A stretch of DNA of 62,132 bases, counting the filler, from Choristocarpus tenellus KU-1152 (lineage: Eukaryota; Protista; Phaeophyceae): NCBI GenBank assembly GCA_964200185.2. It is 11 parts of 11 records of this genome, joined end to end, with 100 filler letters (N's around TTAATTAATTAA, not from the genome) between each part and the next. Parts side by side here need not be neighbours in the genome. Positions count along the whole stretch, not along the records: positions 22,914 to 25,954 come from CAXNAD020022744.1; 10 more parts are not named here. One strand, 5' to 3'. Within the stretch, counting starts at the first letter, position 1; every line of letters starts with the position of its first letter. This document shows, piece after piece, positions 3,187 to 26,102 of the stretch. The notes beneath the pieces are model-generated. The model saw nothing but the letters and a program-made list of their open reading frames with translations, had not been told where the DNA came from and did no database searches. The position numbers and the translations under genes are program-made.

Positions 3187-3449
3187 AAAAGAAGGGATTC
3201 GAGAGGGTAGGTCCTCGTCCATTTGGGGCCGAAATCCAATGTTGTGATTTCGATGTAATTTTGGCTATCGTGTTTGTTAGGAGATGTCAATATCCTTGTT
3301 CTGGACACACATTTTCATGACATACACATTTTACCTACTCCGAAAGATTTTGGAGTAGGTAAAATGCCATAAACGAACCCATGAGAAGCTAAGCCCCAAA
3401 CGGACAAATAGGGCAAAACTCGTACCCTAACCCTAAGATCCTTTCACTC
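3187..3449 (+). mobile_element. MITE family A copy (degenerate left end)
   Basis: Colinear with 757-1014, including the internal hairpin and right TIR. Confidence 0.8.
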
Positions 3450-3818
3450 TCAGGAATGGAACATTTTGGTTTTGATTAGGTTTTAAAACTTCCTTGCCTC
3501 CGGAAATGCTGCATCTGGGTCCTCATTATCCTCCCAGAGGGATCCTGATATTCCCTCAGCACCTTGTCCACTTCATCCCTGCAGTAGCCAAAGGATGTCA
3601 CTGCTCCTCTCACACCCATTGGATCCTCTGTCCAAGCCTAGGTAGCACCAATATTGCACAGCTCTGCAAAATTAGTCCTCTGTGAGCACCAATATGCTAT
3701 GTTTAGGTGATAATTGTGTACTTTGTATGTTACAACCCTTGCTTCGCGTGTCCAAGAATGTTAAAACATAGGCTACTAATCTTTTGTGTACTTGATACGA
3801 TACAGTATTACCAATTCA

Positions 3819-4001
3819 GGCCAAAAATATCTAGGGAGGGGGGGGGGGTCTTCACCAGGTTGTCCATTTGGGCCAAAATAAGGAAAAGTGAATTTACATT
3901 ATCCATCCGATGTATGCAACCAAACCACCGAAAAATCGCGACATGAAAAAATTGACCCCAAATGGACAGCCGTCACGCCCTCCCCCCAGATACTTTGAGC
4001 C
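3819..4001 (+). mobile_element. MITE family B copy inserted in an LTR-like repeat
   Basis: TIRs ggccaaaaatatct / agatactttgagcc; flanks TTCA/GTCA; empty paralogous site at ~48195-48260. Confidence 0.85.
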
Positions 4002-4937
4002 GTCATACTGACTGTTGATTCGCACGTCAGTACTGGTCGTTACTCACATTTATATCATTAGCACCTCAACATGGCATCATCAATCACTGTTAGAACATCA
4101 TGGTGTCTAGAAAGTAGATAGTCTAGACAGTCGACATCTGTCAAGCATACAAACATAGTACAGGTTTATCAGCCAGATTTCTCTGCTGCTTCCTTGCACT
4201 ATGACACCCCTTCACCACAACCAACCTGCCACTGCACAAAAGCACGATTCATTCAATCACAAGTTTTAGCAAAGAATACGACAATATTGTGGGGCTTCCC
4301 TCCATCTAGTTCTTTGTCTAGTCGTTTGGATTTCAATCTCTACATCCTGGGTACACTCCTCTACATAATAGCTCCTATTTGCAATCTCCGGCTGCATTCA
4401 TGGTGCCACCACCAGTCTGCATCAGTTTCAAGTTCTTTGAGAGATATAATTGTTTATCTCCACTTTCTCCCTTGTCACCATAAGCTCTCATGACTTGCTG
4501 TTTGTTTTTGCAACCTACTTGCCTCTTCAAGGGATGGAAGCATGTCTGTCCAGAACTTCTCGTAGACAAGCGCATAATGATGGTCATCCTTATTTCCTGT
4601 GATCTGCACATCCCCTTCAAAGAAGGCGGAATTGTGGAGCCCTCTTGTCCACACCTATATTCCCAAGCATTAGAGTAGAAGGACAAAGATGTTCAGAGCA
4701 GTTTTTGTTGATCCACAACGCTCCAGAGCATTTCCTAAGGAAATATTTGGACAAAAGGAGACTATGCCCTTAGTTGTGCCTCCCCCTAGCTTTGAGACAT
4801 GCCATGTGATACTTCAAGTCAAGAAATTAACTTTTTGAGGCGCAGTAGATAACAAACAGGTACGGTTGAACGTCGGACTCCTCAACTGTCTATGATGAAA
4901 AGAATATCAAGAGAGCACCACATTTTCGAATCCGCAA

Positions 4938-5966: not shown

Positions 5967-6096
5967 GACCCAAAGTATCTGAGGGGGGGGAGGGGTCTAC
6001 ACCAGGGTGTCCATCCACATCAAAACAAAAATCGCGACATGAAAAAATTGACCCGAAATGGAAAGCCGTCACCCCCCCCCCCAGATACTTTGAGCC
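5967..6096 (+). mobile_element. MITE family B, internally deleted copy
   Basis: GACCCAAAGTATCT...AGATACTTTGAGCC with AGT/AGT TSD. Confidence 0.88.
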
Positions 6097-8141
6097 AGTA
6101 TATATATTTGTCCTCGTAATAACCCTAACCCTTAGCGATACCACCGTTCTATTCAAAGCTGGACAATGGGAAAAAATTCGTTCACTCACCAATTTTTTTT
6201 ATTAAGAAAAAAAATTCCCTCTACCAAGTCAATGCCTGAACCCTGTAAGAATTGTGTACTATTTGTTAGCAGCTTGAAAAACGTGCTGTTGTTTCAATAT
6301 TCACCAATCAGATTCACCCGCTTTTAATATCATTTGGCGCACATAAAGTCATGCTAGGGTAGAGACCTGACCAACAGTGTACAATCTGCACCTGTGGGGA
6401 TGGGCGCATACATCTAGTTGTCACATTTTTTCCACTAAAACCTTTCCTATCCAATCAATGTTGACATCACCAATCTTCCTTTACCAGGCCAGCGCATTTT
6501 GTGTTAAACTTGGATGTAAGGCCGCTTGTTGTACTGCTGGAGTATCTCCCGCAGTTGTGGATGGCATGAGCAAGGCGATTGGTCTTAACCTCCTGGCAGG
6601 GCAACAGGTTGGAGCATTATGAACCCACCTTTCTGTCACAAGACGATAGATCCTATGCCACTAATGAAGGAAGGCTGTTTTTATGAGAGATCACAAGGGT
6701 GTCAAATGAATAGATGGAACATACAATCCGTTCAATGATCTCTACTTTGAGTTAAGTGTGGATGAATAAAACCTCCCATTTGGAGTACCAAGGTGTGATT
6801 AGTAATCATGTAGTCCTCGATTAAAGTCAACCCCATTTCCACTATACTTTCAAAGACATTTGATCCTTAGCAGATCCTTTCCTTTCCTTTCCTTTCCTTG
6901 CCGCTGCCACACCATACAACACCAGGAAAAACCATCATGAGAAGTAAGAAGGTTGAGTCATTAAGCACAATACAGGCGGGAAGACCCCTAAGCCAGAAAT
7001 TAAAAAAGCATGTTCAAATAAATGTTTTGTTTCCTCTGAATTTTGGGAAGAAGGGACCCTCCTCCTTGCTTGATAAGAAAATGGCACTGTCATCTCGTGC
7101 TGGCTTTACAAATGAAATGATAGAGACACTGAACATAGACTTGTTGAATTTTCGTAAGGGGGGGGCATTAGTTCCCAAAGATTGACCCTTAGGTTATCTT
7201 ACACAAATTGGAATATGCAAACCTGTCTCTTCCTGGACTTAAGATAGATCATGTTTTTGTCCACTGAGCCTCTTTGCTATTGGGTGCGCCAGTTGCTGAT
7301 TGTTACACGCACTAATCCCTGAATAGATCAGATGAGTCTAAGCAGATCAGATCCAAGATAACTTATTCAGTTCATAACTATCGAGTAACACATCATCTTT
7401 AAAAAAACTTTCATATACTGTCGGATATAGGACCTTGGAGTTTTCCAAATAAAATGCCTTCCTTCTTCCTGATGGTCCATGAAATTGCCTCGTTGGCAGA
7501 GAGCATCCAATTTGTATGTTGGCCACGTCTCCTTAGTGCTTGACACTGTACATCTTGCCCTGGTCCTTTTCGTCTTCATGCAGGTGTCCAAAGCTCTCCT
7601 GTCCTCTGCTGCAAAACATCTCGTCAAGGGAAGTGATGATGATGCATGTCTCATTCTTGATGGTATCAGAGTTGATGTAGGAGAGTCCGATGACATGGGT
7701 GAAGTAAACCTGAAGGAGGGGCAAAGACTGACAGGCAAGAGGAAGGTGTTATAAAACTATCTTAGGGTATCATGCTCCCAAAGTTGGGATCAGTTGGTTG
7801 GGTTTGAGGACAAGATACATGGGACTCCACATTAATCAGATTCTGTACTCATTGTTTCATGCACGTAAAACTGCTTGACTTTGATATGATACACTGAGAG
7901 AGCTTAGTACTTGGAGAAGGCAGAAAACTTGGAGATCCTACTTTTTGCTCATTTTTTTCTGCTGCTGGAGGTCAAGCCTTCATGCAACCTCTGTATCGAT
8001 CTACCTCAACTGACTTCAGTTATATAAAAGCTAGAAAATCGAGCAGAGTGTGTCATATCAATTCCGAATTGTTGGGAGATTGAATCCTTCCATTAGAAAG
8101 GAGCCACCTGATGCACTGCATCCTTTTCACTCGTCAGTTCT

Positions 8142-8215
8142 CTAACCCTAACCCTAACCCTAACCCTAACCATAACACCAACCATAACACTAAACATAAC
8201 ACTAACACAAATACT
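8142..8215 (+). repeat. Interstitial telomere-like (CCCTAA)n grading into degenerate hexamers
   Basis: ctaaccctaaccctaaccctaaccctaac then cataac/accaac/actaac units. Confidence 0.75.
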
Positions 8216-10658
8216 AAGTTGCGCATATCAAGAAGTGTCCAAGTCAGGAGTCACAGTCTTTCACTTAGGATGCAAACAAATCACCTGGGCACGGTACATA
8301 CATAGCCTCTGACTTGTGGTTGAAGTAACATATGTGAATGGTTCGCTTCTAGCGAACAAGTTTATTTGAATGTCAATGAAAGTGAGAACATCTCCTTCCT
8401 CTCTGCTCGTAGCACTATGAATTGTGTCTAAAGCACTATGTTTTGACTTATAAACATAAGGGAATTTCGAGAATCTTTGGCAGGTCCGACCTTCAACAAC
8501 ATGACATTTTGGTGCTCTGAACTTAAGACATGAAATTTCAAGTACTTATCCCTCCTAGTATGTTAGAGGTACACAAACTATATCGGAAGGTCCTGCACAT
8601 TTATCTTCAAGACAGGCAAGCTGATCACTTGCAGGTGCCAGACAAATGAAGAATGTTTCTTCTTGAGGTTATAGAGACAAAGTATCCAAGAGGGAGGTTC
8701 TACTAAGTTCTAATGGCAAATTTGACTTTCTCGTGGCACATGTGTTTGGAGCGCTCAATCTACAGCTAGAGGGGTACATTCAGTTTGTATTGGCAACTTA
8801 TCCTTCTCGATGCCCTAGTTAGTTAGTCTTAACTGTAAAAAACGTTTTTAAAAAAAAATCAAAACGGCCCCCCCAAAAGGGCATCAAACTGGAGTCGTTT
8901 TGCAACACCTCATTGAGCCCCAAAATGGATGCCCTCTCTTAAACCCCCCCTCCCTCTGGGACACTATTGACCTGACCTGAAATTCGTTGATGAGAAAAAT
9001 AATTTTGCGTTCTACAGACAAAGCAATGCAAAGAGTCAAAGTAGCTGGGAGGAGGATTTTGTTTAGAATTTTGTACAGAGAGGAGGATGGCAAAAGGAAG
9101 TGTTTATAGATGAAAGAAAATTGCCCTTTCATCTGATGCATTCACTCTATAACATGGAAATCACTGCAGGGTCACAAAGGCTCCCGAGTGGACGATTGAA
9201 CCCCCTCCCCCTAGGATATTATTGGCTTTCATTATTTCCTTGCTGAGTTCATCTGCACAATCAAGAAACTTCGCAATTTCAGATTAAACACATGGTCGTC
9301 GACCAGTGGTATACTGGGAAAGTATCCAACTTCCACGGTGCATTTGCCCTGATCATCTAACCGGAATTCGATCAGTAGGATATGAGATCATTCTGGCCTA
9401 CCTGGCACTAGTTGTTCCCTTGGAGGAAAATATACTTCACAAATATCCCTAAACTGTTCAAGCAACGACTGGGAAGTAGTCAGGACACAGATTATTGCTT
9501 GTGGACACTACCATATCCTTCGCTCACACAGCAAGTCTTTCAAAGGCAAGCTTGTGTTTTTTTTGTGGGTTATGTATGCATTGCTGTATCGATGAAAAAT
9601 ATGAACATAGAGCAAGCATCACAAATGTTAATCGGAGATATTGATAAACAAATAACCCAGCTCATGCACAGCACGAATAAATAACAACAGAACAAGAGCT
9701 GGTCTAAGAATCTTCGTCATCGCTGCTGGCAGGTGAGGCCTACGAGGCCCTTGTGGCATACCTTGACGACAACCACGATGGATGGAGAGTCCAACTCAAG
9801 GCGGATATGACCAGAGGATGTGACAGGAGCGGGAAGGTGAATTGATTAATCTGCTGCTGCGATTTTGATATCTTCTTGTATGTCTTGTGTGTCATCAATC
9901 ATAGATTTGCACTTTAGGGATCCATACAATATATTACTTGGCAGTAAGGTACCCTGGACCTGGAGCGCCTTGAGCGGGGGAATTAACAATAGTTCATTTT
10001 GCTCTTATTTATAACCAATCCCCTTGGCAATCTCCACTGCATGTTCAAGGGGAAATGTGGGCGACTCTGAACATTGTCTCACCAATAGTCTACCACAACC
10101 CCCAACTCAGACAACCACGGCAAGATGTGGGATATATTTATATTATCTTGCTAATAAACTGTATCATTTGAATTCTCTTCCCTCACTTCCCCTCCCCTCT
10201 TCATCAGGTATCATGGGTCTGCCATTCTCATTCGTCAGTGTGGGGTCTTGCAGCATCAGTTGAAAATGCTTCCTGTCCTGTGAAAGGCATTCCCGGGTCG
10301 ACAGAGCAATGTTGCACAACCCACAAGGACACAGAGCATTTCAGCAAGCAGATCCAGGAAGGAGTACCACCTGGGTACACTCCTCTGACTCTTCCGCCCA
10401 AGTCAATTGAAACAAAAAACACTCAAGCTCAGATTGCAGAGAGATCGTCATCTCCATTGAAACAGTTGGGTCCCCAAGGGGGGGGGTGATAAGCAGGCTC
10501 AAGGGAAAGTTTCATAGGCGAAAGTGGACTAGTGGGGGAAAACAGTAAGTCCTTGTCTTCGAGTTGGGAGGCATCCAGCTTTAAATTGGTTGGGGAGACA
10601 TACTGTTGTAGCACTTGGTATTTTCATTCCTTAGGCAGTGGTGGACGGGTAAACAAAG

Positions 10659-10917
10659 AAGTCAAAGTATCTTAGAGGGTAGGGCCGTGTCCATTTGGGG
10701 GCCAAAATCCAACGCTGTGATTTTCATGTAATTTTATCTGTCGTATTTGTTAGGAAGTGTCAGTATCCTTGTTCCGGACACACCATTTCATAACATATAC
10801 ATATTACCTACTCCGAAACATTTCGGAGTAGGCAAAATATCTTTAAAACCCCATGGGAAGCCAAGCCCCAAATGGACAAACAGGGAAAAACTTGTACCCT
10901 CTAAGATACTTTCACTC
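10659..10917 (+). mobile_element. MITE family A full copy
   Basis: TIRs present; AAG/AAG TSD; 259 bp. Confidence 0.88.
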
Positions 10918-10919
10918 AA

Positions 10920-12620
10920 GGTGGAGCAGCCCTGACCTTGTCCTTGAGCGACAATGGATGCTTGGTATTCTCTCTTTCAATGTTCAAAGGTGTCCGAAGG
11001 TTTGTTTGGAAGGACCAAGGATCTCTAGAAAGACAGAGAGAGGTTTATTGTTTAGTTATGGTTGCCATGGATCTTGGAATGCGTTTTAGAGGTGTCCGCA
11101 TCTGCTTCGGTCCAGGTTATGCCAGGTGGCCGGGGGTTGTACGGCTGGGACTGAGCACATCAAAAGTATTGTGACCCCACGCTTGAGTATCCCTGCGACA
11201 TACTGAGTTGAGTTCCTCCCCAGCAAAAGGATAAAGATCCATTTTGATTGGAGGTACGGTGTGGTTGTGTAAGAAACGATTGGCAATATCATTGGGTGCA
11301 TACCTTGCACTATTGATGTTGAATACTTCTATAATGCCATACCTCTCTTCTAAGATATAATAGGCCTCCAGTATAGAAACCCATGCTCGTTCATGTGCAT
11401 TCTTTACTACTGGAGCATATTGTACCTCTCGAAGATAAATCCTTGCATTCATTGCCTCTCACCCGTACCTAATAGAGAGAGGAGAAGTGGGGTCTCCAAG
11501 GTCATTGTTGCATTGTATCCATGTTAAGCTGTCCTTGGCGATCTGTTGTCCCACACAACTAGTTATATTATTGTTTATTAACTTGTACCACAGTTAAGAA
11601 GAGAGTGAGATACCTTCACTAGGTGGGGCTCACCAGTCCTTACACTTAATGACTCAGAATACCAAATGACTCAACGTATCTCTAGTACACGTCAGAAACA
11701 CTCCGACTCTAATAGTCCGCCGATTACTTCTGGTCAAATACCCCGCCTAAATATCCCGAATGTCCCGCATTATCTTCTGTGCGTACATAAAATAATACTT
11801 CAAATCATATTCTCACAAATGGTCAAGGATAATGTTGACAACGTTTTATATACCCAAACCTTGGTGACCACATTTGAGTATACGGGTATCTACACAGGGA
11901 TTGACATATAGCACCCCCACATCTGTCATACACATGACACTTCCCACAAAAGAAAATTTTACTTTTTGCAGTTGAGACAGTTTGCCCGACATGAGATAGA
12001 ACCGCAGTGAAGGGAGTTTAGGGGGGTGGAGGTGTTGGCAATCAGTGTCAATATTCCCACTTTGGGCCCCCACTACCGTTCTGGATATGGGGTCATGAGG
12101 TTTTCTCTCCCTGGAGTGTTACTGAACATCACCTACCTGTCCCACCTTTATCCTGATATCTCGTGTGCTATATATACAGTTGGAGGAGGCAAATGCCCTA
12201 CCTTGTAATATGCCCTCTACTGCATTCCACACTTGTATCCCTTCCTATCGAGATTGTACCACTGCGATTCCCATACTCAACCTATGCCTCCTCCCCACCC
12301 CCACCACATTTTTTTCATGTACTCTCTGCTGGAACCCAAGCCTCAGAATATATACCCGTGAGTAATCTCTGAAGTCTATCCAAATATGAAAAGCTAGGAC
12401 TCCATTGTGTCCCCAAGGATACTACAATGTCCAGCATGCCTTCCCCCCTCTTCCTCAGTGAGGTTTCCCCTTGACGTGCCACTTCTACTCTCCCAATTCT
12501 AAATTGTCCTGCTTGTACCTCCTACAGATCTACTAATTCATCCTCTGCCGAAACAAGACATATTTACGTGACTAGCTGACAGTATCGACCTTGGCAGTGT
12601 CTTTTAGAGGAAGTAATCTG
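10920..12620 (-). mobile_element. Decayed LTR-retrotransposon internal region (gag-like); 11845-12620 is homologous to 26975-27660
   Basis: Shared blocks with the 27-kb region (tatacccaaaccttgg; gctaggactccaYtgtgtc; ttctaaaYtg); broken ORF at 11117-11452; PBS-like TGGTGAGCCC on the minus strand near 11626-11635. Confidence 0.4.
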
Positions 12621-12853
12621 ACGACTTGTTATCTTCTAATGACTATATATTTTCCTGTTTCCAGCGGAGGTGTAATCTAAATACGCTGCCAAATGGCTGT
12701 TTCCACAATTATTCTAGCTCAAATGGGAAGAAGATTCAATTAACTACTTTCTATCTTCACACCTTGTCCTGCTGTCTCTTGTTGCATCTTGTTCTGATTG
12801 CTATGTAACGTACACTACCTCATCCCCTACATTCATTCCCGCAAAGAAAAAAA

Positions 12854-13038
12854 GACTCAAAGTATCTGGGGGGGGGGTGTCCATTTGGGTCAATTTTTTC
12901 ATGTCGCGATTTTTTTGGTCGATTTTTTTGGTCATTTGACGGCCTACATCGGACGGACAAGGTAAATGCACTTTTCCTGATTTTGATCCAAATGGATTCC
13001 CTGGTGTAGACCCCCACCCCCCCCAGGTACTTTGGGTC
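12854..13038 (-). mobile_element. MITE family B full copy
   Basis: GACTCAAAGTATCT...GGTACTTTGGGTC; AAA/AAA TSD. Confidence 0.88.
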
Positions 13039-13488
13039 AAATGTTAAGTTGTACGGTGTGTATCCTGCACGATCGATGCTGTTGTCTGTCTCATAAATAT
13101 CGGTCTCATCCTTAAATATTTAGCAGTCTGCATTTATGTCAGAGAAATATTACATCTACTGTCTTGTGTAGAGTAAAACATCTTAGAGAGAGAGGCTTCT
13201 GTGATTGCCTTCTAACAGCCGATCATCAAAATCGAGGATGGAGCATACTATGGAGGATGAGTTGGACCCAAAATGGTGCGCGAAAAGTGCCCATATGTTT
13301 TTTTTGTAAATGTTGCGGCACTTTTTTAGGGCCCCGCTACGAATGGGAATCCATGCCAAAGGTGGTAGTAGGACAGTGTGTGGGGGGTNNNNNNNNNNNN
13401 NNNNNNNNNNNNNNNNNNNNNNNNNNNNNNNNTTAATTAATTAANNNNNNNNNNNNNNNNNNNNNNNNNNNNNNNNNNNNNNNNNNNN

Positions 13489-13720
13489 AGACACCCTAGT
13501 GTAGACCCCCCCCCCCCTCCCAGTTACTTTGGGTCATAATCTTAATTAACCTAAGCATCATTGCTTGTTTCAGTAAGAACATTAATTAATCCCAATGTCG
13601 CCATTGAAGTAGCGGCTGTCCATTTGGGGCCCCTATTCCCATGTCGCGATTTTTGGGTGATTTGGTTGCATGCGTTGGATGAATAATGTAAGTGCACTTC
13701 TCGTGGTCAGGGTCCGAATG
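13489..13720 (-). mobile_element. MITE family B end (13489-13535) and internal fragment (13611-13720)
   Basis: Similarity to the other family B copies. Confidence 0.7.
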
Positions 13721-15386
13721 TGCATACCTGCATTACAGATCATGCCGCATTGTGTTACTTACTTAGAATACCGGATATCAGTAACATTCTTACTCGTTGA
13801 GCTATTGCACTCCGACCTTATGATTTCACTGTTGAACACAACTCTATTTCGTATTATCAAGTTTGAGGAACAGGGGAAATCCGGTGCTCCAATGCTGGCA
13901 CCAATCCGTCGTAGTGTACCCAACAGTACTCATCCATTTTACCACATTTGTTCAAAAGGAATATGAGGTGTCTGCATCTAACCTTGTCTAAGCAACTCCC
14001 GTCCAAAGTGTTCGTGAACCATTTACTAGTTCCACTAGTGTGTTCCTTCCAGTGGATCCAGGGCAATTGCGCAAGGACCAGAAATCCAAGTTCGGACTAA
14101 ATTTCAGAGTCCGTAAACGCAATTGATTGCTCGTACGAGAGTAGAACGTGTATTTTCGATTTTTGGTCCATTTGAGTTGTTACACTCCGATCAAGGTACT
14201 GAATTTGAAAGCAGTATTGTCATGCACAGAGAGTTGCAGCCTGTCTTGTTAAAGTATCCGACAGTTCATGCATGGATGGAAGAGATGAATACAGGAGTAC
14301 AACCGAATATTGTAGAGTGATTCTTTCCAAGCAGAGAGGGGGAACCTACAACCCCAAAACCATGTTTAATGGAATCAAATTCTATCCATCCGTTCGCATA
14401 CAAGAACGAATTTGGATTAACTAACTAATAATTCTTATACTCCGACTCTGCATATATATATATAGTGATATCCGTTAAAGTTGAAGGAGTCTATTCGAAC
14501 ATGTCTTCGAGTACAAGAAAACCAAAACCACACCTTATCAATTCTGTGTTAGAGAGAGTACATGCTACGTTGCATTCTATGCATGGTCAAAATATCTTAG
14601 AGGGTAGAGCCGTGTCCGTCTGGGGTCATAATCCATTGTTGTAATTTGATGTAATTTTGGCTATCATGTTTGTTAGAAAGTGTCAATATCCTTGTTTGGG
14701 ACACACCTTATCAGAACATACATTTTAGGTACTCGGAAACATTGCAGGGAAAAAAATGTCATTAAAAGCTTGTGGGAAGCCAGGGTCCAAACGAACACAA
14801 AGGACAAAACTCGTACCCTCTAGGATACTTTCACTTGCAAGCAATGTATATCTCGGTTTCCGAGGATAACTGGACATTGTTACCACTGTTCGAACAGTTT
14901 AGTACATAACACAGCTTTCAGTGCAAAGTTGCATGGAACCCGTTTTCCTTCTGTTTGGAAGACAAGCACGTTTACCTGTTGATATAATTCTTCGTCTAAC
15001 GGTGATTTAGATATTACTACTGAAAAGGACTCTCAGCAAATCAAGGATAATTTATAGCTTGCATTCAAGCTGACACACTGCAAACTTTATGAACACGTTC
15101 CTGATGTGCCAACCCAACGTCTCGCGTTCCCCGTTTTCGTACGTGGTTATCAAGTTATAGTCCGTAGACCACATGAGAGTACTGATGTTCCGAATCCAAA
15201 GTTACTTCACCATTGGAGGGGTCTGTATAAAGTACATCCGAAGGTATCACCTAACGTGTAAAGGGTCGTATTACCTGGAAACCCACGCCCATTTTCCGTT
15301 CATCTAGGTAGAATGAAAAGTTACTAACCTCTAGTTCAACCTCCCAAACCAGACTTGAATGAACTGGTCTATTTGTACCTGGGAAA
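13720..15386 (+). pseudogene. Ty3/Gypsy integrase remnant interrupted by a MITE
   Basis: rve-type motif FGPFELLHSDQGTEFES in ORF 14123-14320; GPY/F-like KLLHHWRGLYKV at ~15200; multiple stops. Confidence 0.7.
14584..14836 (+). mobile_element. MITE family A copy
   Basis: Slightly degenerate TIRs; GCA/GCA TSD. Confidence 0.85.
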
Positions 15387-15644
15387 GAGTGAAAGTATCT
15401 TAGAGGGTACTATTTTTGCCCTGTTTGTCCATTTGGGGCTTGGCTTCCCATGGTTCTTTTATGACATTTTGCTACTCCAAAATGTTTAGGAGTAGGTAAA
15501 GTGTGTATGTTATGAAAAGGTGTGTCCGGAACATGGATATCGACACTTCCTAACAAACACAATAGCCAAAATTGCGTCAAGATCGCAACATTGGATATTG
15601 GCCCCCAAATTGACGCGGCTCTACCCTCTAAGATACTTTGGCTC
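15387..15644 (-). mobile_element. MITE family A full copy
   Basis: GAGTGAAAGTATCTTAGAGGGTA...TACCCTCTAAGATACTTTGGCTC; AAA/AAA TSD. Confidence 0.88.
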
Positions 15645-16162
15645 AAAACCGTTACCATTGCCGGACGTTGACAATCAAAACTCTCAACCAGCTGTTGGCC
15701 AGTACACTATTTATAGCGTTGATGGACGTTGATGGATATAGGCGTGGTCTTGGTTCTGGTCGATGTTCGTCCACAAATATTACATACTGCCTTTGTCTTT
15801 GTGGCTATAGACCTTCTTGTGACCTTCACACAAAAGAGTAGAAGAGATCCCACAATCCCATGAAATGATTACAGCCTATCGTGTAGTATATGGATTCGAC
15901 AACCAGTAAAATATCATCCTACATAGTGTTGATCTGAGAATTCCTACATTTAACATATTCCTTTGTATATTCTGTAAATCATGCATTGCTGCTGTAATAG
16001 TGTAACCTGTCTCTTCAGCAAATAGTTTATTGTATGTATGTGCGGAAAGATCTTCGCCAATTTATTGCTTACTTGTGTGTTTGTTTGACTTGATTACTTG
16101 CGTGTCTTGGCGTGGATCTCGTGTTACCTACATATCACAGTCCCTTACATAGGTTGATCATC

Positions 16163-16590
16163 TGTTACAGGCGAATGGCGCGAGTATTTCTTCTCGCGTT
16201 CTAACAAGCGCGAGCAGTATACACGCGTGGGGAACCTTATAAGAGGAACTCCGATTTGCTAAAGATCGTAAGTGTAAGATCTGTTTTCAGATGTATCCAA
16301 CTTCTGTTTACCAAAAACAAAATAAAACGCAAATGATGATAAAAATAATAAAGAGCGCTGCTTAATAAGAACCCCTCTACTCAGTTATTTTCTTGATGAG
16401 AGAGGTACCCCCTGTTCTGCTGAGTTGACGTTCGACTAACCTGATGTGCGATGGACTCCTCTGGACTTTTGAAGTATCCTGAGAGGCTGGCGCGAGCATC
16501 AGAATTTCCTATAAGCTTGTGGATTGGAGCTATACATCCTGTGGAGGTAAGCTTCTGGAGCGTGCCGTAACATGGGGGTCCTACCGAGAC
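16163..16590 (+). mobile_element. LTR (16163-16572) followed by a tRNA-Pro-like PBS
   Basis: TGTTAC...GTAACA ends; next bases TGGGGGTCCTACCGAGA resemble a tRNA-Pro PBS; homologous to 26103-26589. Confidence 0.6.
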
Positions 16591-17429
16591 TTCCGCGTTG
16601 TAACGCATCTAGTCTAGACAAATCGTTTGTATGTAATTTTGTCACAGATGGCTACTATCTCTCGTTTTGCGAATATACTATTTAACTGATGTTAAAGAAA
16701 TTGGTGTTCCCAAGACTTGTGTATGTAAATGACTCGTCGATTAATTTCTTATTATGTAGAACAGGTTGTACATGAAGTAAGGAAGGTGCAAGGAAGGAGA
16801 GTGAAAAAACACAGCTCAAAGGGGGTTGTCGCCTTACCGTTCATATTATAATAGCACATCACTCATTATCTGTGTCACTTGCTACAACCTTCATGCGTCA
16901 CTCAAATAACACGTCAGTCACTTAACACGTTACTCATTCTTTGTGTTGTACTATAATAACCTGGATAATATTATCACGATTACTCAACAGAAAACTTTCC
17001 TATCAATTATCCTGTTATCGAAACATAATTCCAAGAACTGATTATTTATCCCACGAAATCTTTTACACATGAAAAAAGAGCATATTCTTAACAACTGGTA
17101 ACATATGTCATTTAACGACCAGCTCTGACTTGGAATCTCGTCTTTACCAGGTTTATCAACCCTTACAAATAAATTATACATACATGTTGGTGGCATTTAG
17201 ATAAATTAACAATACAATTTATTTATTTCTCAACTCTCCTCGTTTGCATGAGTGGACACATGTGGTAGTGAAGAGATCGTATCACGGGGCACATTAGCAC
17301 CTGTGTACTTAGAGGTGGCTGTTCATTATATCATGTCACGTTTTGCTTTGCTCAAGAATTCTGGCTTATTATTACTTATTTTTCTGTTCGCATCCCACCG
17401 ATTCTACTCCTCCTTCCCCATTGTAACAC

Positions 17430-17780
17430 CACTGGTGACCAACCAATGCGACTACTTCCTTCACTGATTTCCAATCATCCCAATGCGACCAATCTTCACA
17501 ACTGAGTTCCAGTCACCAGCCTATCCAGTGGCCAACCAGTGCAAACAGCCTTCACCCCTGAATTCCATTTACCAACCACATCCGATGACCAACTAGTGCG
17601 ACCAACTTCACCACTGACGTCCAGTCACCAACCAATGCGGGCAATTTCCGCGAATCCATCCACCTTCCTCCACACTACTTTCCACCACTTTTCGCTCACC
17701 CCACCATTCAACACCACTCAACCCTACCACACTTTCCACCACGTTCCCCTCCACCACACCACTCGACACCACTCAACAAT
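17430..17780 (+). repeat. Imperfect C/A-rich tandem repeat
   Basis: Recurrent caaccaatgcgacc...cttcaccactga motifs, then (ccac)n-like low complexity. Confidence 0.5.
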
Positions 17781-18069
17781 CATATAAGAACACCCCTTCA
17801 TCACCCACTTCAATACAATGTCTTTGAACTAGAAGACATATACCCCGCAAAACTTGACCTCCTCCCCTTTTCCCAGCATTCCAGTCGATCGTGAGCAATG
17901 GAAAGGATGGTTGTGTGGGAAAGGTTGCTCGGAGGTTGCGCCTTGTTCTAGTCCTGCTTGTTTGTCTCATCAACCTCAAGTTTAACCTTTTGTTCTGTCC
18001 CTTCTCTTCCTACCCCTTCTGCCTCCTAGCCACCCAGTACTTAACTCTTTGTCCAACTCTATATGTTCT

Positions 18070-18246
18070 GACCCAAACTATCCGAGGGGGGTGGGTCTTC
18101 ACCAGGGTGTCCATTTGGGTCAAAATCGGGAAAAGTGCATTTAAATTATCCATCCGACGTATGCAACCAAATCACTCAAAAAATCGCGATATGAAAAAAT
18201 GGAACCAAAATGGACAGCCGGCACCCTCCCTCGGATACTTTGAGCC
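18070..18246 (+). mobile_element. MITE family B full copy
   Basis: GACCCAAACTATCC...GGATACTTTGAGCC; TCT/TCT TSD. Confidence 0.88.
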
Positions 18247-19399
18247 TCTTTTTGCACTAATCAACACTCCCCTCCCCATACACCGTATATCCCAGAATTG
18301 TCCTGTCCACAAACTCAGATTAGATCATAAACGTCCACTTTTATGAAACGGATTTATTGATCATGACATAACTAACTGTGAAACAGATGGGAACAAGTCG
18401 ACAGGTTCTTCAGACTGAAGGGGAGTGGGAAGACCCACAGGAGGCAAGAAAATGGAGAGAGACAAGGCAAGATGGAGATCAATCCCCCAGAAGATCACTC
18501 AGGAAGAGTGAACAAGTGAAAAGTGAAAGAAGGGGGTTTGCAAGGTCCCCTCAAATCGCCCGCTACTCACTTCAAGCAGATGTTAACTTCAACATGCAAA
18601 AACAGGTGCAATATGAACAACATATTCTTCAAGGTAGGTTACCTTAAGGTATACCTTCTTTGGAAGATGGCTGTCACATAACCCTATTAAATACAAAGAT
18701 TAAAACCTACCACCAGAAAAAAGACGGAGACTTCAGACGAGTCACACTTGTTCGTTGTTTTTCAAGTGGCATAGACCCCCTGACATAATGTAATGACTCT
18801 ACAGTCACCTCGTATCGTTTTGGAGAGTTGAGCCACCAAGATCTTACGTCTAAGTTGTCCGCTTGGAATATTGCAGTCGTCGTGAGCAATATTCCAATCA
18901 ATGTCAGAATGTGAGGAAGGAGAATAGGTCCACACATTGATCTCGTCGTCTACTATTTTGGTATTGATCATGTACACGGGCTTGTGTTTTCACGCAACGA
19001 ACAGCCTCTCGTCAAAATTGAGGATGGAGCATTTAATNNNNNNNNNNNNNNNNNNNNNNNNNNNNNNNNNNNNNNNNNNNNTTAATTAATTAANNNNNNN
19101 NNNNNNNNNNNNNNNNNNNNNNNNNNNNNNNNNNNNNGAGACCTTGTTCTCCACTACAGCAACACCAACATCCACCACATAGACAATGCCATAGCATAAA
19201 GAGACACCATTGATTGCTTCACACAGACAATGCCGCACAATTGCCATTTGGGGGGGGGACCAACCAAGGCAGCCAGTCAACCTATTACTACTAATTGAAC
19301 AGTTAAGATTCGCAACAAGAAATACATTGGGAAATACCATTCACTTGAAATATAATATGGGACATGGAAAAAAAAAAAAAAACACTCTCCTCTCCCTCA

Positions 19400-21140
19400 C
19401 TCCCTCAATCTCTCACACCCCCGCATAGATCTCTTTGATACCAGAGAAGGTGCACTAGGAGTCACAGGAGAGGATACAAACATGGATGTACAACACCACA
19501 TAACACTCATGCACATGTCTGTGCAAATGCACTACCTAAACAGACTGAGAAAACGGCAATTACAAATAGGAACCCTCACCAAAAGCAAAACAAAGGAAGC
19601 TGGCTTACCAAATGCTTTCCTTGATTGTTGGAAGCGCCACTGTCTTTGTGGAATGACTAAACAACTCAACAAGGGCACAACTGGAGGGCAATCTCATCCC
19701 TCCTTTCAGCAGATAATTCCAGCCTAGTCCTAACTATCAAGAAGCAACAAAGCCAAGGCAAGGCTCTACCTCTAGATAGAACAGCATACTAGGCAGGGAC
19801 AAAACAAACATTAACAAAGCAACAAGAGGAGAACAAACACAAGAACATCGATATTTTTTTGTCATTCTCAAAAGAGCACATATGACAATAGAAATATGCC
19901 AAAACAAAAAAAACACAAAAGGCCAACGCCAGGCAGATCAATTACTCCGCCTGCTGAAAAGATGGACTCAGCAAACATATCTTCACAAGGTGCAATGTAG
20001 GATGCCACCTTGCAGAACCGTACTACAGCTTTGAGAGCAGTACCAGCTATTCAAAAGCAACCTCAAGTACAAGCTTTTCTTCGTTTCACCCCTTGGAATC
20101 AGGGCGAGAGAGCTGGCGGCGTTGAAGAGTATCTGCCCTGTGGGCCGCTATGAAAGCAGCCACAGAGTCAGCATTTACCACAGTACTGGGTCCCTCAGTA
20201 GGGAAGAAGTACGAAGCATTGCTAGGAAGGTCCACGATGACCATCTGAGGAACAAAAACAAACACAAACACGGAAGCAACATTTTCGCACCAACAAGGAA
20301 AAAATAAAAATGAGACGAGGCATTTGAACCTACACGTTGAAGCAGATAACTCTGATACAGATTCTTTGAAAACTTGGCTACAAAAGTGCTACTTCTGTCC
20401 TCAAATTAAGATCCGTAGGTGTTTCAGCCCATTGGGGCAGTTGATTATTACACTATTGATTGGGTTGCACATTCCCTGCACACTCCAAACATCCTGGACC
20501 AAGCGCCACACCATCACATTGCATGGAAGCCTTCTAGCATGAGCTCTCCCAGATCTTATTTTCCCGTCCTTCCTTAGATGAGGCAATCTGTGGTGGGTTG
20601 TCCTCCTTCTCGAGCACGATCAAGTCCAAGATTACCTGCGGGGACGTCTAAACCTTCCCCAGTATTTCAGCGAGACTGCATGGATCCCCAACCGCCCAAA
20701 CAATGCACTCCTGATTGGGATAGCATTCACAGCCTCCTGAAGCTTCATCCAGATTGATGCCTTTGCGACCACATTTCCCATTCCGAAGCAACCCAATGGC
20801 AGGATCAAGGATGCCCCGATCTTCCTGCACCTCGAATCACTTCCATATCCTGACGACACTCATCCAGGAGATGCTCAACACGCCAGCAACTTGTATCAAG
20901 TCCCCTTTGGCCAGAACAACATTTCAGGTGCCTGCAAAGAGATACATGATCGCAGTCCTTCTCTCTGATGTCCTTGGGTTCTTCCTCTTGTTTCTACTAG
21001 CGACTCTTTCTTTTGTCAGAAACGGTCTCAAGGTGGACGGAATACCTTCCTCCAGAGCTTTCAAATATCGAGGTCTGTTTGCCCCCCTCTTAGAGCTCTG
21101 GATTGGAGGGTACCCCACCCAATATCCGATGATCAAAAAA
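19400..21140 (-). pseudogene. Possible non-LTR (LINE) retrotransposon remnant, APE endonuclease region
   Basis: FAGT*NV resembles the APE start motif (ATWNV); many stops and frameshifts. Confidence 0.3.
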
Positions 21141-23359
21141 GTGCGTGAATCGATTAATCACAGGTCTCGACTATTCCAACAGAAAAAAAAAACTCTTCAA
21201 CAAAATCATTATATGAAAGGGGTTGGAACAAATGAGATCTCTCATATAAACTCGACAATTTTCTCAACGGAAACGTAGCAAAAAAAAATTAAAACCTTGC
21301 GAAAAAAAAAGAAAAGATTTGTCACTCTTACTACAAATTGCAACAAAAATGTAATGAAGTAATAAAATAAAAATCATCACCATTACGTCACGATCACTTG
21401 AATAGCAAACAAATCAATGCTCTCACAAAAAAAAACAAAGACCCCAGCAGATTTGAATACACCTACTTCCACAGTTGTCAAAGTTTTCTGGGTCACTTGG
21501 TACACAAAATGGTCGGGCAGACAGGAGGAGAAGACACCTTCCGGTCAACAAAAAACACTGAGTAAGCTACACCTGTGCCTTATATCCGCAGCCAGCGACA
21601 GTTACATACTACAACAGAATAAAATCCCACAGAAAAAAAGAAAAAATAATACGATCAGGTGTAGAGCAGTAACTACAAGCGAAGATTCTTGATGATTAGA
21701 ACCAAAACTTCAGAACAATATGCCAATAAGAACATACATGCACACAAGGAGGCAAAGAAGGCTCAGACGACTCATGGCAGTCAACGCTCAAAATTATTCC
21801 CTTTCTATCGCCTCGGTCAAACTCCTCCACCTCATGTAAGCCCCCCCCCCCCACAGCATTGCTCTTCATCCCTAACACCACTCACTATCAACACCCCTGA
21901 TAGAGACAGACATATAGGAGCATCATTCTTCTTGGGGAGTGAGCTAGACTCGTGCATCCAGAACGTGCGTTCCAAGACGACGACAAACACCATACTTTTG
22001 CCTCACTACAAAATGTGGTTAAAATTGACAGCCAAACACACATAGCCAGTACATGCAATAAAGTACATTACAACACTCCGAATTCACAGCAAAGGGGTTC
22101 ACACCTTTTCAAGTCCCGCCCCCCTTGCATGTGGTCAAGATTTTTCGCCTGAACGGAAACAAATAGCCCCAAGTATAGATATACATAGATCCAAATACAT
22201 ATTTTCAAACTGTGATAATCAAAATAAAACCTGCCCTCCCACTTGAGCTGAAGTAATGCTAGGCATTGATGGTATCATTTTAAGGTATCATTATAAGGAT
22301 GCTGACAAAAAAGGGTACAAAATTCTCCTCTTTTTTTCTTTTTTACAATTGCACGTAGAGGCTTTTCAGAATTCTGTTGAAAATTTTGATCACAGTATAG
22401 AAATCAACACTCTCTAGTCAATTCTAGCACACATGCACATAGACAATAAATGAGAGTGAATAGCAAGAGACAAAAAAAAAAAATGTCTTCAAATGAGAAA
22501 AACGACAAAAACCCGGGTATATCTTGTATACTCTTCACTCACATCATACAACACAGGGTAGGGGGAAGAATCAACTCAGGAATTTTCTTTCTTCAACCGA
22601 CTCATTTTCTTTTATTTTTGTTTTTCACAAAGAACAATATTTATTTAAAACTACCACTCACGGTACAAAGCAGAGACAATGCTCACATTCACCTTGTACC
22701 TGCCCTCGCAGGAAGAGAGTCTCTCCTTAAAAGGGGGAGGGGAAGGGGATAGTTGAGGTTTGTGCTCACAAGAGGTCCCCTCTCGACGCCTATCCTCCTC
22801 CCCCCCCCCCCCCNNNNNNNNNNNNNNNNNNNNNNNNNNNNNNNNNNNNNNNNNNNNTTAATTAATTAANNNNNNNNNNNNNNNNNNNNNNNNNNNNNNN
22901 NNNNNNNNNNNNNATATATATAATATTTTTTGGTAGACTGGAGAGAGGGGGGGGGGGGGGGGGGGGGGAGGGGGGGGGGGGCTTGTGGCCTACCACTGTT
23001 ACAAAACAAAAACAAGTACACTCAAAAATAAAATACTTCAGAAGTAGTCAGTTCAATAGCTGTATCCAATCTATTAATCATAGCACTACACTCTCTCTCT
23101 CTCTCTCTGCCTAACAAAGTCTGACCTAAGCCCCAAAAATTGAAGCCTTTGCTCGGAGAGTGTGTATCACCGATAGCAAGAGAAACTGGGTCTGAAATTT
23201 CTATGAAATTTCTATGAAATTTCTATGGTCAATTTGAATTAGGCCAACAAAGACCCACACAACATAATCTTACTTATAATAACAACATACAATAACAATA
23301 AATAATAATAATAATAATAATAATAACAACAACAACAACAAACAACACATGCGTGCCCT

Positions 23360-23894
23360 ATCAGTCCACATCCACAACATTTCAACAGCAACCATCACAT
23401 CAAAATAATCTTTCTCAAATGTCCACACCCCATGCCTCCCTCCCTCCCCTCCCCCCCACAACAGCTCACATCCCACGACAAAAGGAGCGCACCTCTCTCC
23501 CCTCACATCTTCTTCTTCCTCCTCCTCCCCACCACCCCCCGCTGCAAACTTATCGAAGTCACCCATTGCAACCCTTGCCCTCTTCCGTCCCTTCCCACTC
23601 CCAGTCTCCTCATCCTCCCCCTTTCCGCCGCCGCCAGCAGTGACCCCAAACCCTCCTGACCCCTGCACGCCTCCGGCCCTTCCTCCAACTCCTCTCGCTT
23701 TGGCCTTTCCTACCTTGTTATTTGAGTCCTCCTCATCATCATTACCACAACCATCATCATCACCATTCCCTTCTTGCCCAGTTTGGGTTTGTCTCAGTGA
23801 AGGAAGGGAATTGACTTCGGCTGCGATGTTGTTATCTCCAGGTCCATCGCCCAGGGATGATGATGACGCAAAGTTCATGTCCGGCAAAACTGTC
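23360..23894 (-). CDS. Probable internal exon of a host gene, possibly a METTL21/Methyltransf_16-like methyltransferase with an acidic/Gly-rich insert
   Basis: Polypyrimidine + gctgcag acceptor; open frame ending CELLWG...FDVMVAVEMLW, similar to the LxWG...FDxI motif; donor not certain. Confidence 0.4.
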
Positions 23895-23936
23895 TGCAGC
23901 AACAGAAAGAAGCAGAGCACCAGCAAGATGAGAGCG

Positions 23937-23990
23937 TTGGGGTGAGGGTTGGGGTGAGGGTTAGGGTAAGGGTGAGGGTTGGGGTTAGGG
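23937..23990 (+). repeat. Degenerate TTAGGG-like hexamer array
   Basis: ttgggg tgaggg ttgggg tgaggg ttaggg taaggg tgaggg ttgggg ttaggg. Confidence 0.75.
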
Positions 23991-24267
23991 CTATAATACT
24001 ACAAGTACTATTATTATTATTGATATTTTCTTCACATTGGTCTGAAGGAACCGTGAAAGGTATATGGTAGTGTACTCTACATGGTAGTGTACTCTACATG
24101 GTAGTGTAGAGTAGAGGGGGGGAAAGTTAGGACTTCACCCAAGGTAGTGCCGGTGGTGGTAAATAAAATGAAAAGGTTACTACTATTGGTTGTTGATGCT
24201 ACTACTACAGTATTCTTTATTATTATTATCATTAGCTATTTATTATTTCAATAGTTAATAGTACTAC

Positions 24268-24513
24268 AGGTGTATTCATAGTATTGTATAAAGCAGTTTT
24301 TATTATATCTAAATGTTCTTTTTTTATCATAACTTGTTTATATTCAGTTTTGCCTTTGGCTATTCTTGGAGTAAAGAGTTTGCCATCAGAAGCAATAGCT
24401 GCCACAAGTCCTGCAAGTTGAATAGGGGTGCATAATAAGAATCCTTGACCTATAGATAAGTTTAGAGTATCTCCTAATCTCCAGCTGCTGCCATAAGCTT
24501 TTTTCTTCCAGTT
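24268..24513 (-). pseudogene. mrdA: Penicillin-binding protein 2 transpeptidase-domain fragment, Rickettsiales-like
   Basis: Manual translation (absent from the ORF track): NWKKKAYGSSWRLGDTLNLSIGQGFLLCTPIQLAGLVAAIASDGKLFTPRIAKGKTEYKQVMIKKEHLDIIKTALYNTMNTP; the W..GDTLN.SIGQG...TP.QLA signature is typical of PBP2. Confidence 0.85.
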
Positions 24514-24560
24514 TTATTAAATGTTATTCTGCTAGTCAGATTAATTAGCTCAAATAACAT

Positions 24561-24910
24561 ATGCTCTCCCCAAAGAAAAAACCATTTAGTAATTCCAGAA
24601 AACACTCTAAATTTAAAATCATCAATTGGCCAAAGTACAATAATATTCTACGTAATAGAGGTCGTATAGATTTTATGATCTCAAAGAATTTAGGAGAGAA
24701 TTGGTATGAACAAAACAACAATGATAAAAAATCCCGGAGGTCGAATAAGATATAGTGATCAAGCTATTCTTGTATGCTTGCAAATTAGATGTTTGTTTAA
24801 ACTAAAACTAGGACAATCCCAAGGATTCATTAACTGGATATTTGAGATATCAGGTTTACAAATAACTTGTCCAGATTATACCACTTTAAGTAGACGTGGT
24901 AAGAGTTTAG
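24561..24910 (+). mobile_element. IS5-family (IS903-group) transposase N-terminal fragment, frameshifted and truncated
   Basis: KFKIINWPKYNNILRNRG + GGRIRYSDQAI...LFKLKLGQSQGF...CPDYTTLSRR; frameshift at the A-run near 24725. Confidence 0.88.
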
Positions 24911-25215
24911 ACGTAAATGATTAGTTGATTATAGGATTTGGTAGTTACCGTCTCTTTATGCTTAAACCCTCTTTGGATAAGACCTAGCTTTTCTAATTTA
25001 ACGATTTTTCTACGGATTGTTTCAGTGGAACATCCATGTAATTCAGAGAGTTTTTTATAAGAAAAATAAATGCCTTTGGTTTTAAGCTTTTTTATAGCTA
25101 TAACATTACCATCTACATCCTTTATCTTATTTGGAGTATACCAAGAACGAAGAGTGTCGTAATATATATTAATTGCTAAATAATCAGGGCTTCCATTATC
25201 ATTTGTGACGATGTT
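24907..25215 (-). pseudogene. Fragment of a Rickettsiales plasmid-type DnaA-like/HTH replication initiator
   Basis: DNGSPDYLAINIYYDTLRSWYTP...GIYFSYKKLSELHGCSTETIRRKIVKLEKLGLIQR (winged HTH); AT-rich; no own start; ends at the IS junction. Confidence 0.7.
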
Positions 25216-26102
25216 GTGAATCTGAGACTTGCGGGTTAAGCAAAAAAGTATTATTACTAGTATTATTATTATTATTATTCTCATTAGTCGGAGAGGTCCC
25301 AGACCCATGGTCAAAAGGTAGCCAGAAGGAGACAGGACAGTACGCACAGGTTGAGGAGATACAGAGTATCCGAGAAGAAAAAAAGAGCACTGAAGAAAAA
25401 AAAAAGAAAGAGAAAGAGAAAGAGAAAGAGAAAGAGAAATATTGGATCCAGGCTATCTACGAGGTTAACTAAGAGAACCAGGTGGTAATGCACACTTCAA
25501 CATCCTTCTAAAAAAATAAATAACAATGTCGTATCAGGTCCGTCTACAACTAATCCAAAAAAACATCACCCATAACATGTAGCAAGAAAAAGGATGCGAC
25601 AATAGGGAAGGGGGGAAAGAGAGGGACAAGATTTATTTTTTTTAAAAGGAGATATGATGAGAATACATTAGCACATTCAGCAGGTGATTTCTATATCTGC
25701 CCAAGATGCAGAGGTGCATATCCTACAACAAGGTGGAGGGGGGGGGAGGGGGGGGGGGGCACTTCCAAACAACAGACAGAATAGGCATTTCCATGTCTTT
25801 GGAAAAACTCCAAACCACTCCCAACAGCAACAGCCACGATAAACATAAATAAAATAAAAAATAAAAAATAAAAAGGAGAATAATACGAAGCCACCATCAA
25901 AATAATATTTTTTAATAGAAGTCTACATCTTGCGACATGACATGGGGGGCAGCGNNNNNNNNNNNNNNNNNNNNNNNNNNNNNNNNNNNNNNNNNNNNTT
26001 AATTAATTAANNNNNNNNNNNNNNNNNNNNNNNNNNNNNNNNNNNNNNNNNNNNCCCCCCCAGTTACTTATTTCTTCTCATGTTTTAGCAAACACGAACA
26101 TT

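Follow-up and report, generated by a model that had tools for sequence, protein, structure and literature searches.

The nuclear contigs of Choristocarpus tenellus KU-1152 (assembly GCA_964200185.2) raise the question of whether DNA of an intracellular bacterium has become part of the genome of this alga and, if so, how it came to lie where it does. The window is the whole stretch of DNA that was presented for analysis (62,132 nucleotides, 11 parts from 11 records), and our analysis was confined to the part at positions 22914-25954 (record CAXNAD020022744.1; 3041 bases, no N). In an initial annotation, made from the sequence alone, three bacterial gene pieces of Rickettsiales type were described in this part, between 24268 and 25215. 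All three are real, and their similarity to bacterial genes is far beyond chance (E = 5e-19 for the first, 1e-16 against PF13737 for the second, and 82% amino acid identity for the third). They are truncated pieces that together occupy ~975 bases (24269-25245) in the order mrdA, which encodes penicillin-binding protein 2 (PBP2), IS903-group insertion sequence (IS) of the IS5 family, and plasmid DnaA-like initiator, with the orientations -, +, - (Table 1). The right edge had been set too early, as the DnaA-like homology extends ~30 bases further, to ~25245. We consider it quite probable that this insert is a mosaic of three non-contiguous Rickettsiaceae fragments that were ligated by end joining at a break in a nuclear intron, and that it is non-functional and young.

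Table 1. Features of the insert and of the host DNA around it (positions along the window)
Feature	Position	Strand	Basis
mrdA (PBP2) internal fragment, transpeptidase domain	24269..24510	-	TIGR03423 match, identity to Rickettsiaceae metagenome-assembled genomes
Filler or ambiguous origin, 8 bases, between PBP2 and IS pieces	24511..24518		Register comparison with L001, L002, L097
IS903-group IS5-family internal fragment, N-terminal transposase part	24519..24911	+	PF13737, NF033579, environmental copies
Rickettsial plasmid "DnaA-like" initiator fragment, winged-helix part only	24911..25245 (right end approximate)	-	P0151, L083, HTH_DeoR/HTH_36 matches
Host exon, 401 bases, 55% GC, open in the frame of a 218-residue open reading frame	23493..23893	-	X3 record 17, GT..AG borders
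Degenerate interstitial TTAGGG-like (GGGTTA-type) array, intronic	23932..23990		Tandem Repeats Finder (TRF), period 6/12/18, 75-85% matches
Left host flank, (TTA)n at 24217-24247 and ACTAC..AGTATTATTATT repeat motif	24195..24268		TRF; repeat family D4
Right host flank, (TAT)n at 25249-25279, repeat motif shared with left flank	25246..25292		TRF; repeat family D4

The PBP2 piece consists of 81 stop-free codons and matched positions 411-502 of the 593 positions of the profile TIGR03423 (pbp2_mrdA; E = 5e-19). A 57-residue part of it also matched the Pfam Transpeptidase domain weakly. Its score of 68 bits, against a full-length cut-off of 455 for TIGR03423, is that of a fragment and not of a gene. 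The scan for PBP2 loci covered one genome per prokaryotic species, and the best loci came from metagenome-assembled genomes (MAGs) of Rickettsiaceae, with amino acid identities of 93% (L001 and L002), 86% (L003), and 84% (L004). The identity was 64% for Megaira polyxenophila and 50-59% for Tisiphia and Rickettsia. At the nucleotide level, 86.4% identity to L001/L002 was observed across exactly 24269-24510 and nowhere else in the 3041 bases. The mrdA gene of L002 is a 592-codon open reading frame (ORF), and the window piece corresponds to approximately residues 419-499 of its product. A tree built from the 81 residues placed the window piece with L001/L002 (support 96/85) inside a clade to which L003 and L004 also belong. 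Where L001, L002, and L003 agree, 14 substitutions are private to the window; 10 of these fall on third codon positions, and 9 leave the amino acid unchanged. This signature suggests that most of the divergence of the piece was acquired in a bacterium, under selection.

The IS piece matched PF13737 (E = 1.3e-16) and NF033579 (E = 3.8e-15), and its homology to the IS5/IS903 family is clear. Its reading frame is split across two frames by an extra T at 24732, after an A6 run, which was absent from all six environmental copies aligned and is thus private to the window. Relatives of this piece were found on 19 aquatic metagenome contigs (76-92% nucleotide identity), the closest being L095 and L097 (both 92.4%). 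In nearly all contigs that hold this part of the IS, the similarity starts at 24519 and stops at 24911. The environmental copies remain alike for 43 more bases leftward, up to a common terminus GGCTTTGTTGCATGAATAAT (seven copies), which we take to resemble the IS903 inverted repeat. Missing from the window piece are therefore ~43 bases at the start of the element, with the terminal repeat, and all that follows approximately base 436. An intact element of this family has terminal inverted repeats and a complete DDE transposase, and in the window the GGCTTTGTTG... terminus is absent and the transposase is reduced to a frameshifted PF13737 part. Lacking its terminal repeat, the piece would not have been placed by transposition. 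We also considered that the fragment might start at the true IS end, as after an IS insertion in the donor; this was rejected because the environmental copies place the terminus another 43 bases outward. In an unrelated sediment metagenome (run X4), the IS was present as a full bacterial version that is ~97% identical to the window piece and continues past both window breakpoints. The claim that IS903-group elements are characteristic of Rickettsiaceae did not hold, as thousands of enterobacterial plasmids match too; judged by these matches, the IS family alone is not diagnostic of the donor.

The DnaA-like piece comprises 112 codons with no internal stop. An exhaustive HMMER search returned 265 relatives, and most of the closest are proteins of 435-692 residues in which the match lies near the N-terminus. 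The best relative, P0151 (620 residues), is 82% identical over the 112 residues, which correspond to its residues 75-186. The gap-free nucleotide identity to L083, the contig that encodes P0151, is 86.5%. Each full-length relative that was tested has both a winged helix of the DeoR/HTH_36 type and, at its C-terminus, a DnaA_N domain (PF11638). A complete initiator of this type (winged helix plus DnaA_N, ~500-620 residues, beside parA) is present among the relatives, and the window holds only its helix-turn-helix (HTH) part. On L083, a contig of 33% GC, the P0151 gene is closely preceded by a ParA-type gene, a small uncharacterized gene, and a small HTH gene; the gene for another relative, on L085, stands in a ParA and toxin-antitoxin context. 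By gene content, these contexts can be assigned to a plasmid partition/replication module. Among the entries of the plasmid database, only six Megaira plasmids, some of them annotated with a "DnaA-like protein", matched the DnaA-like piece.

The module itself is shared by the two AT-rich contigs (L083:4204-7863 and L085:4565-7617): a ParA protein (CbiA/AAA_31), small genes, and a winged-helix + DnaA_N protein of 540-620 residues. On L085, it stands beside ParE toxin-antitoxin, ankyrin, RecT/YqaJ, and SocA_Panacea genes. Judged from this gene order, the ParA/DnaA_N module looks like the replication/partition core of plasmids in the donor clade of Rickettsiaceae.

The initial annotation had expected the best matches in Megaira, Rickettsia, or Tisiphia. 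The nearest relatives of all three pieces do belong to Rickettsiaceae, and M. polyxenophila, Tisiphia, and Rickettsia proper drop out as donors. In the tree of full-length MrdA, L001-L004 formed a clade with 100/100 support within a larger group (96/97), whose other members are the Megaira endosymbiont of Nemacystus, a brown alga, and many MAGs from freshwater and the sea. The four MAGs stood apart both from the M. polyxenophila clade and from Tisiphia and Rickettsia. The contig L097, which carries one of the two closest IS copies, also encodes an IS256 transposase that is 98% identical to that of M. polyxenophila plasmids from Euplotes. The window thus groups with an intracellular bacterial lineage through its PBP2 piece (nested with 96/85 support), and the DnaA-like and IS pieces are nearest to Megaira-type relatives. 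The MrdA trees, the IS256 link on L097, and the plasmid matches together place the putative donor in the Rickettsiaceae, within the wider Megaira-like radiation, in a group of unnamed MAGs. With ~14% DNA divergence from the nearest genome, the predicted donor itself is not yet sequenced. A search of the literature by the accessions of the MAGs and of the sequencing runs returned nothing. Of note, the two IS elements of L097, a metagenome contig of the Joint Genome Institute (JGI), lie at 3065-4345 and 1995-2990 (the IS256 like that of Euplotes woodruffi symbiont plasmids and the IS903-like copy), and a stop interrupts the IS903-like copy at a site that is read through in other copies. Mobile DNA of the Megaira type appears to be widespread in aquatic metagenomes.

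The DNA on both sides of the insert has the marks of a eukaryotic nucleus: an exon with GT..AG borders, microsatellites, and a TTAGGG-like array. For the host side, as for the junctions below, the supporting data were runs X1, X2, and X3 (samples S1-S3), all of one organism and one study, and X4, which holds part of the sequence. The evidence consists of k-mer contigs with mean depths, not of raw reads or read pairs. The 401-base exon belongs to a minus-strand gene and lies ~375 bases from the insert, downstream of it; on the minus strand, its donor GT is at 23492-23491 and its acceptor AG at 23895-23894. The peptide encoded by this exon is of low complexity. X3 record 17 (2129 letters, depth 129) matched the analyzed part only at 23493-23896, with zero differences, and diverged from the window at both ends of this match. 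The three additional matched letters beyond the exon (CAG) are what is expected of the end of the upstream exon. Elsewhere in the 3041 bases, the depth of X3 was 0-7, apart from repeats and from the IS and DnaA-like pieces, of which this run contains diverged copies. X3 thus has the behavior of RNA, and 23493-23893 that of an internal exon in a minus-strand gene. Among the records listed, the longest ones, no other part of record 17 matched the remaining 2 kb, which is suggestive of an upstream intron of at least ~2 kb that would contain both the telomere-like array and the insert. A 146-codon ORF (24907-25347) on the minus strand, which is also the strand of the host gene, runs from host repeat into the DnaA-like piece, and X3 showed only trace depth and no splice joint over it. 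Exact-protein look-ups with the product of this ORF and with the MrdA proteins of L001 and L002 returned no record.

The microsatellite flanks and the probable exon described in the initial annotation were both recovered, and TRF showed several further microsatellites as well as poly-G runs. The TTAGGG-like array is also present, although it does not adjoin the insert as had been stated: it lies ~280 bases to the left. Its very high summed depth indicates that this array is repeated in the genome. The motif ACTAC..AGTATTATTATT of the left flank (24195) recurs at 23995-24034 and at 25244-25292 (copies at 25244 and 25253) and is dispersed in the host DNA on both sides (family D4). The description of the tract as sharply AT-rich was half true. 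The insert has 31-34% GC, which contrasts with the exon region (55%) and not with the immediate flanks (34-39%).

Both host-bacterium junctions were crossed without mismatch by contigs of two samples. The left junction (24268/24269) is spanned by X1 record 4 (23680-24600, 921 letters, depth 22.7), which runs from exon-side host DNA through the whole PBP2 piece into the IS piece, and by X2 record 10 (23680-24443, depth 7.2). The right junction is spanned by X1 record 7 (24882-25388, depth 29.5) and X2 record 14 (24894-25388, depth 7.4). All four records showed zero differences from the window. Contigs containing the insert had depths of 22.7-29.5 in X1 and 5-7.4 in X2, compared to 14.5-19.2 and 6.3-12, respectively, for contigs of pure host DNA. 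Hence, host-level depth, rather than the depth of a symbiont, holds for the insert in two samples that differ threefold in depth, as the initial annotation had predicted for a true insertion. The refutation test set in that annotation (junctions without spanning reads, or coverage like that of a symbiont) is thereby answered in favor of the insert, at the level of contigs. No second PBP2 copy at >=90% identity, such as that of a symbiont, was found in X1 or X2, because the summed depth over the PBP2 piece equals that of the single contig. The claim of Rickettsiales-type DNA joined to eukaryotic nuclear DNA is therefore supported by the junction-crossing contigs, the exon, and the Rickettsiaceae relatives, and the insert probably lies in an intron.

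Skips such as a 24231->25732 joint were examined as possible alleles with an empty site. They were rejected, as their short side comprises only 20-21 letters and ends in a poly-G run; the 24231->25732 skip would also delete ~490 bases of right-flank host DNA. Rejoining the flanks regains the host repeat motif, with a score that random joins also reach in such repeat-rich DNA, and this was not used as evidence.

The insert combines pieces from the interior of three different sources (chromosomal gene, mobile element, and plasmid gene) with mixed orientations, an 8-base filler between the PBP2 and IS pieces, a 1-base overlap at the joint of the IS and DnaA-like pieces (by register comparison), and no IS terminus. 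This is the pattern of fragments end-joined at a double-strand break, which is also that of complex nuclear inserts derived from Wolbachia. In complex nuclear insertions of mitochondrial or plastid DNA (NUMTs and NUPTs), organelle DNA is captured at double-strand breaks by end joining, often in introns or repeat-rich DNA. The window insert resembles these in its non-contiguous fragments, mixed orientation, and short filler or 0-1 base of microhomology, and differs from them in that its donor is bacterial and not organellar. By analogy, DNA set free from intracellular bacteria would have entered the nucleus, where several fragments would have been joined together and into a chromosomal double-strand break. 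The site of integration would have been microsatellite-rich DNA with one repeat family (D4) on both sides. The insert is dead, having no start codon context, active-site region, DDE domain, DnaA_N domain, or transposon end. It also appears young relative to the 14% distance to sequenced relatives, because the third-position signature is kept, the 81 and 112 codons are free of stops, and one frameshift is the only visible decay.

Several points weigh against this reading, and each is taken here with the explanation that it favors. The three pieces could have adjoined already in a decayed donor plasmid. The nuclear integration would then be genuine and the mosaic pre-formed, as a single ~1-kb segment from a rickettsial plasmid or chromosome region that had decayed and was crowded with IS elements. 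Megaira-type replicons are indeed rich in transposases and gene remnants: L082 carries a partial transposase of 198 residues beside integrases, and on L097 the IS903-like copy with its stop and the IS256 lie side by side. The similar divergence of all three pieces from their nearest relatives (86-92% nucleotide identity) would also fit a common source. On the other hand, mrdA is a housekeeping gene of the chromosome and the DnaA-like gene belongs to a plasmid partition/replication module, and in a tblastn search none of 80 mrdA loci had this IS or the DnaA-like gene within 5 kb. Moreover, the IS is cut inside both of its ends and not at a terminal repeat, unlike the product of an IS-mediated rearrangement. 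A pre-formed mosaic is the main alternative, conceivable but, in our view, rather unlikely.

Another point concerns the linkage of the left and right halves. The IS is multi-copy, and the exact version of 24834-24858 was absent among the X1 and X2 contigs listed, which held only a higher-depth variant there. The linkage of both halves into one 975-base insert thus rests partly on the source assembly. Two nuclear inserts, or a single much longer one, could have been collapsed by the assembler across the repeated IS, with host-PBP2-IS... at one locus and ...IS-DnaA-like-host at the other. The contigs that break at 24882 and 24911 share 30 letters (k minus 1), which marks a branch of the assembly graph at the IS/DnaA-like junction, and IS variants at 90-95% identity are present in X1, X2, and X3. 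In opposition to such a collapse, the IS fragment is covered along its full length by exact pieces with zero differences (X1 records 4 and 5, X3 records 22 and 23, and X1 record 7), and the same host repeat motif (family D4) is found in both flanks, the latter being a weak argument. We regard a collapse as distinctly improbable.

The remaining points concern the data themselves. No record describes X3 as an RNA library, which makes the splicing argument inferential. The supporting contigs come from one study and are perhaps the source data of the window, so that they test the assembler and not the biology. Finally, the diverged IS and DnaA-like copies and the high depth at 25127-25185, described below, mean that other rickettsial DNA, possibly that of a living symbiont, may be present in the samples. 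An artefact of assembly or library preparation, in which DNA of a co-sequenced symbiont was joined to host DNA through AT-rich low complexity or chimeric molecules and no nuclear insert exists, would draw on these last two points, on the (TAT)n-type low-complexity DNA at both junctions, and on the shortness of the 3-kb contig with its poly-G runs of two-colour Illumina type (the same words reach a depth of 25,000 in X4), but it is very unlikely, since the junction contigs are unique on both sides (589 host and 332 bacterial bases on the left, ~364 bacterial and 143 host bases on the right), agree without differences in two samples at host depth despite the threefold difference between these, and are accompanied by no PBP2 copy at symbiont-like depth, and since the private frameshift of the IS piece fits a dead copy. 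Chimerism with a co-sequenced symbiont, in particular, is unlikely because contigs of two samples cross both junctions at flank depth.

Other rickettsial copies were detected in the same samples. Over 25127-25185, the most conserved part of the DnaA-like piece, the summed depth with the letters of the window was ~7100 in X1 and ~3900 in X2 and fell to ~50 at 25186; this signal was absent from X3. It may come from an abundant symbiont or plasmid that shares the conserved stretch, or from short, high-depth, AT-rich unitigs. Copies of the IS and DnaA-like pieces that are 90-95% identical to the window were observed at 24521-24626, 24792-24888, and 25138-25218 in X1-X3. The diverged IS copies had depths of 80.6 in X1 and 7.7 in X2. 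The diverged DnaA-like copy (~90% over 25138-25218) had depths of 20 and 7.7, respectively, which is host level. In X3, the RNA-like run, this DnaA-like variant, which differs from the plasmid-like contig L083 at diagnostic sites, lay in a 1254-letter contig at a depth of 177, compared to 129 for the host exon. The diverged copies could represent additional nuclear inserts, of which one would be transcribed, or could belong to a living symbiont. We see only a slim chance that the insert is one of several rickettsial inserts in this host, of which at least one other is expressed. The 1254-letter contig could then stem from a gene that came from a rickettsial plasmid and is now nuclear and transcribed, or else point to ongoing transfer by a living symbiont of an undescribed Megaira-like clade.

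The mosaic insert is a further example of a kind of transfer that is already well known. The nuclear genome of Volvox carteri contains a ~9-kb block with 16S, murB, ddlB, and ftsQ-like remnants of a hydra-group (Megaira-type) symbiont, in strains that are symbiont-free, and this block was interpreted as the trace of a past infection (PMC4324946). Both cases involve DNA of hydra-group/Megaira-type Rickettsiaceae in a eukaryotic nucleus, present as non-functional remnants (PMC4324946), and both include genes of cell-wall synthesis (murB, ddlB, and ftsQ in Volvox, mrdA in the window). The Volvox insert is partly syntenic with a symbiont genome and holds 16S rRNA pieces along its ~9 kb, whereas the window insert is a scrambled three-piece mosaic of ~1 kb that contains plasmid and IS DNA, is intronic, and derives from a different clade. 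Nuclear inserts of Wolbachia ("nuwts") are likewise well documented in arthropods and nematodes, for example, in Drosophila ananassae (PMC4558871). Like these, the window insert would have passed from a Rickettsiales endosymbiont to the host nucleus and is diagnosed by junction-spanning sequence and host-level coverage; nuwts are also mostly non-functional and decaying. In contrast to nuwts, which reach the size of whole genomes, its donor belongs to the Rickettsiaceae and not, as Wolbachia, to the Anaplasmataceae.

The window insert is thus probably a dead and recent trace of an intracellular infection. As a molecular fossil, it would record that this eukaryote or a recent ancestor harbored a member of a Rickettsiaceae clade that has so far been seen only in metagenome bins, and it would supply a host link for that clade. 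It reveals no new mechanism or function. Its value lies in being a small, clean case of a multi-fragment intronic insert that mixes chromosomal, plasmid, and IS DNA, which bears on how bacterial DNA is captured. For annotators and contamination screens, it implies that not every rickettsial match in this assembly is contamination.

No match was obtained when 22914-25954 was scanned for Rfam families and tRNAs. The poly-G runs at 22947-22981 and 25735-25759 share a near-identical 29-base pattern (93% alike). The same poly-G words were found in X4 as 31-letter contigs with depths of 6,000-25,000, which is the signature of a two-colour Illumina artefact. The second run is bridged by X1 and X2 contigs with unique sequence on both sides and may be real. 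Two perfect short tandem repeats, both of host repeat families, were also observed in intron DNA, one at 24064-24108 (17-base unit ATGGTAGTGTACTCTAC, 2.6 copies) and one at 23193-23227 (11-base unit TGAAATTTCTA, 3.2 copies).

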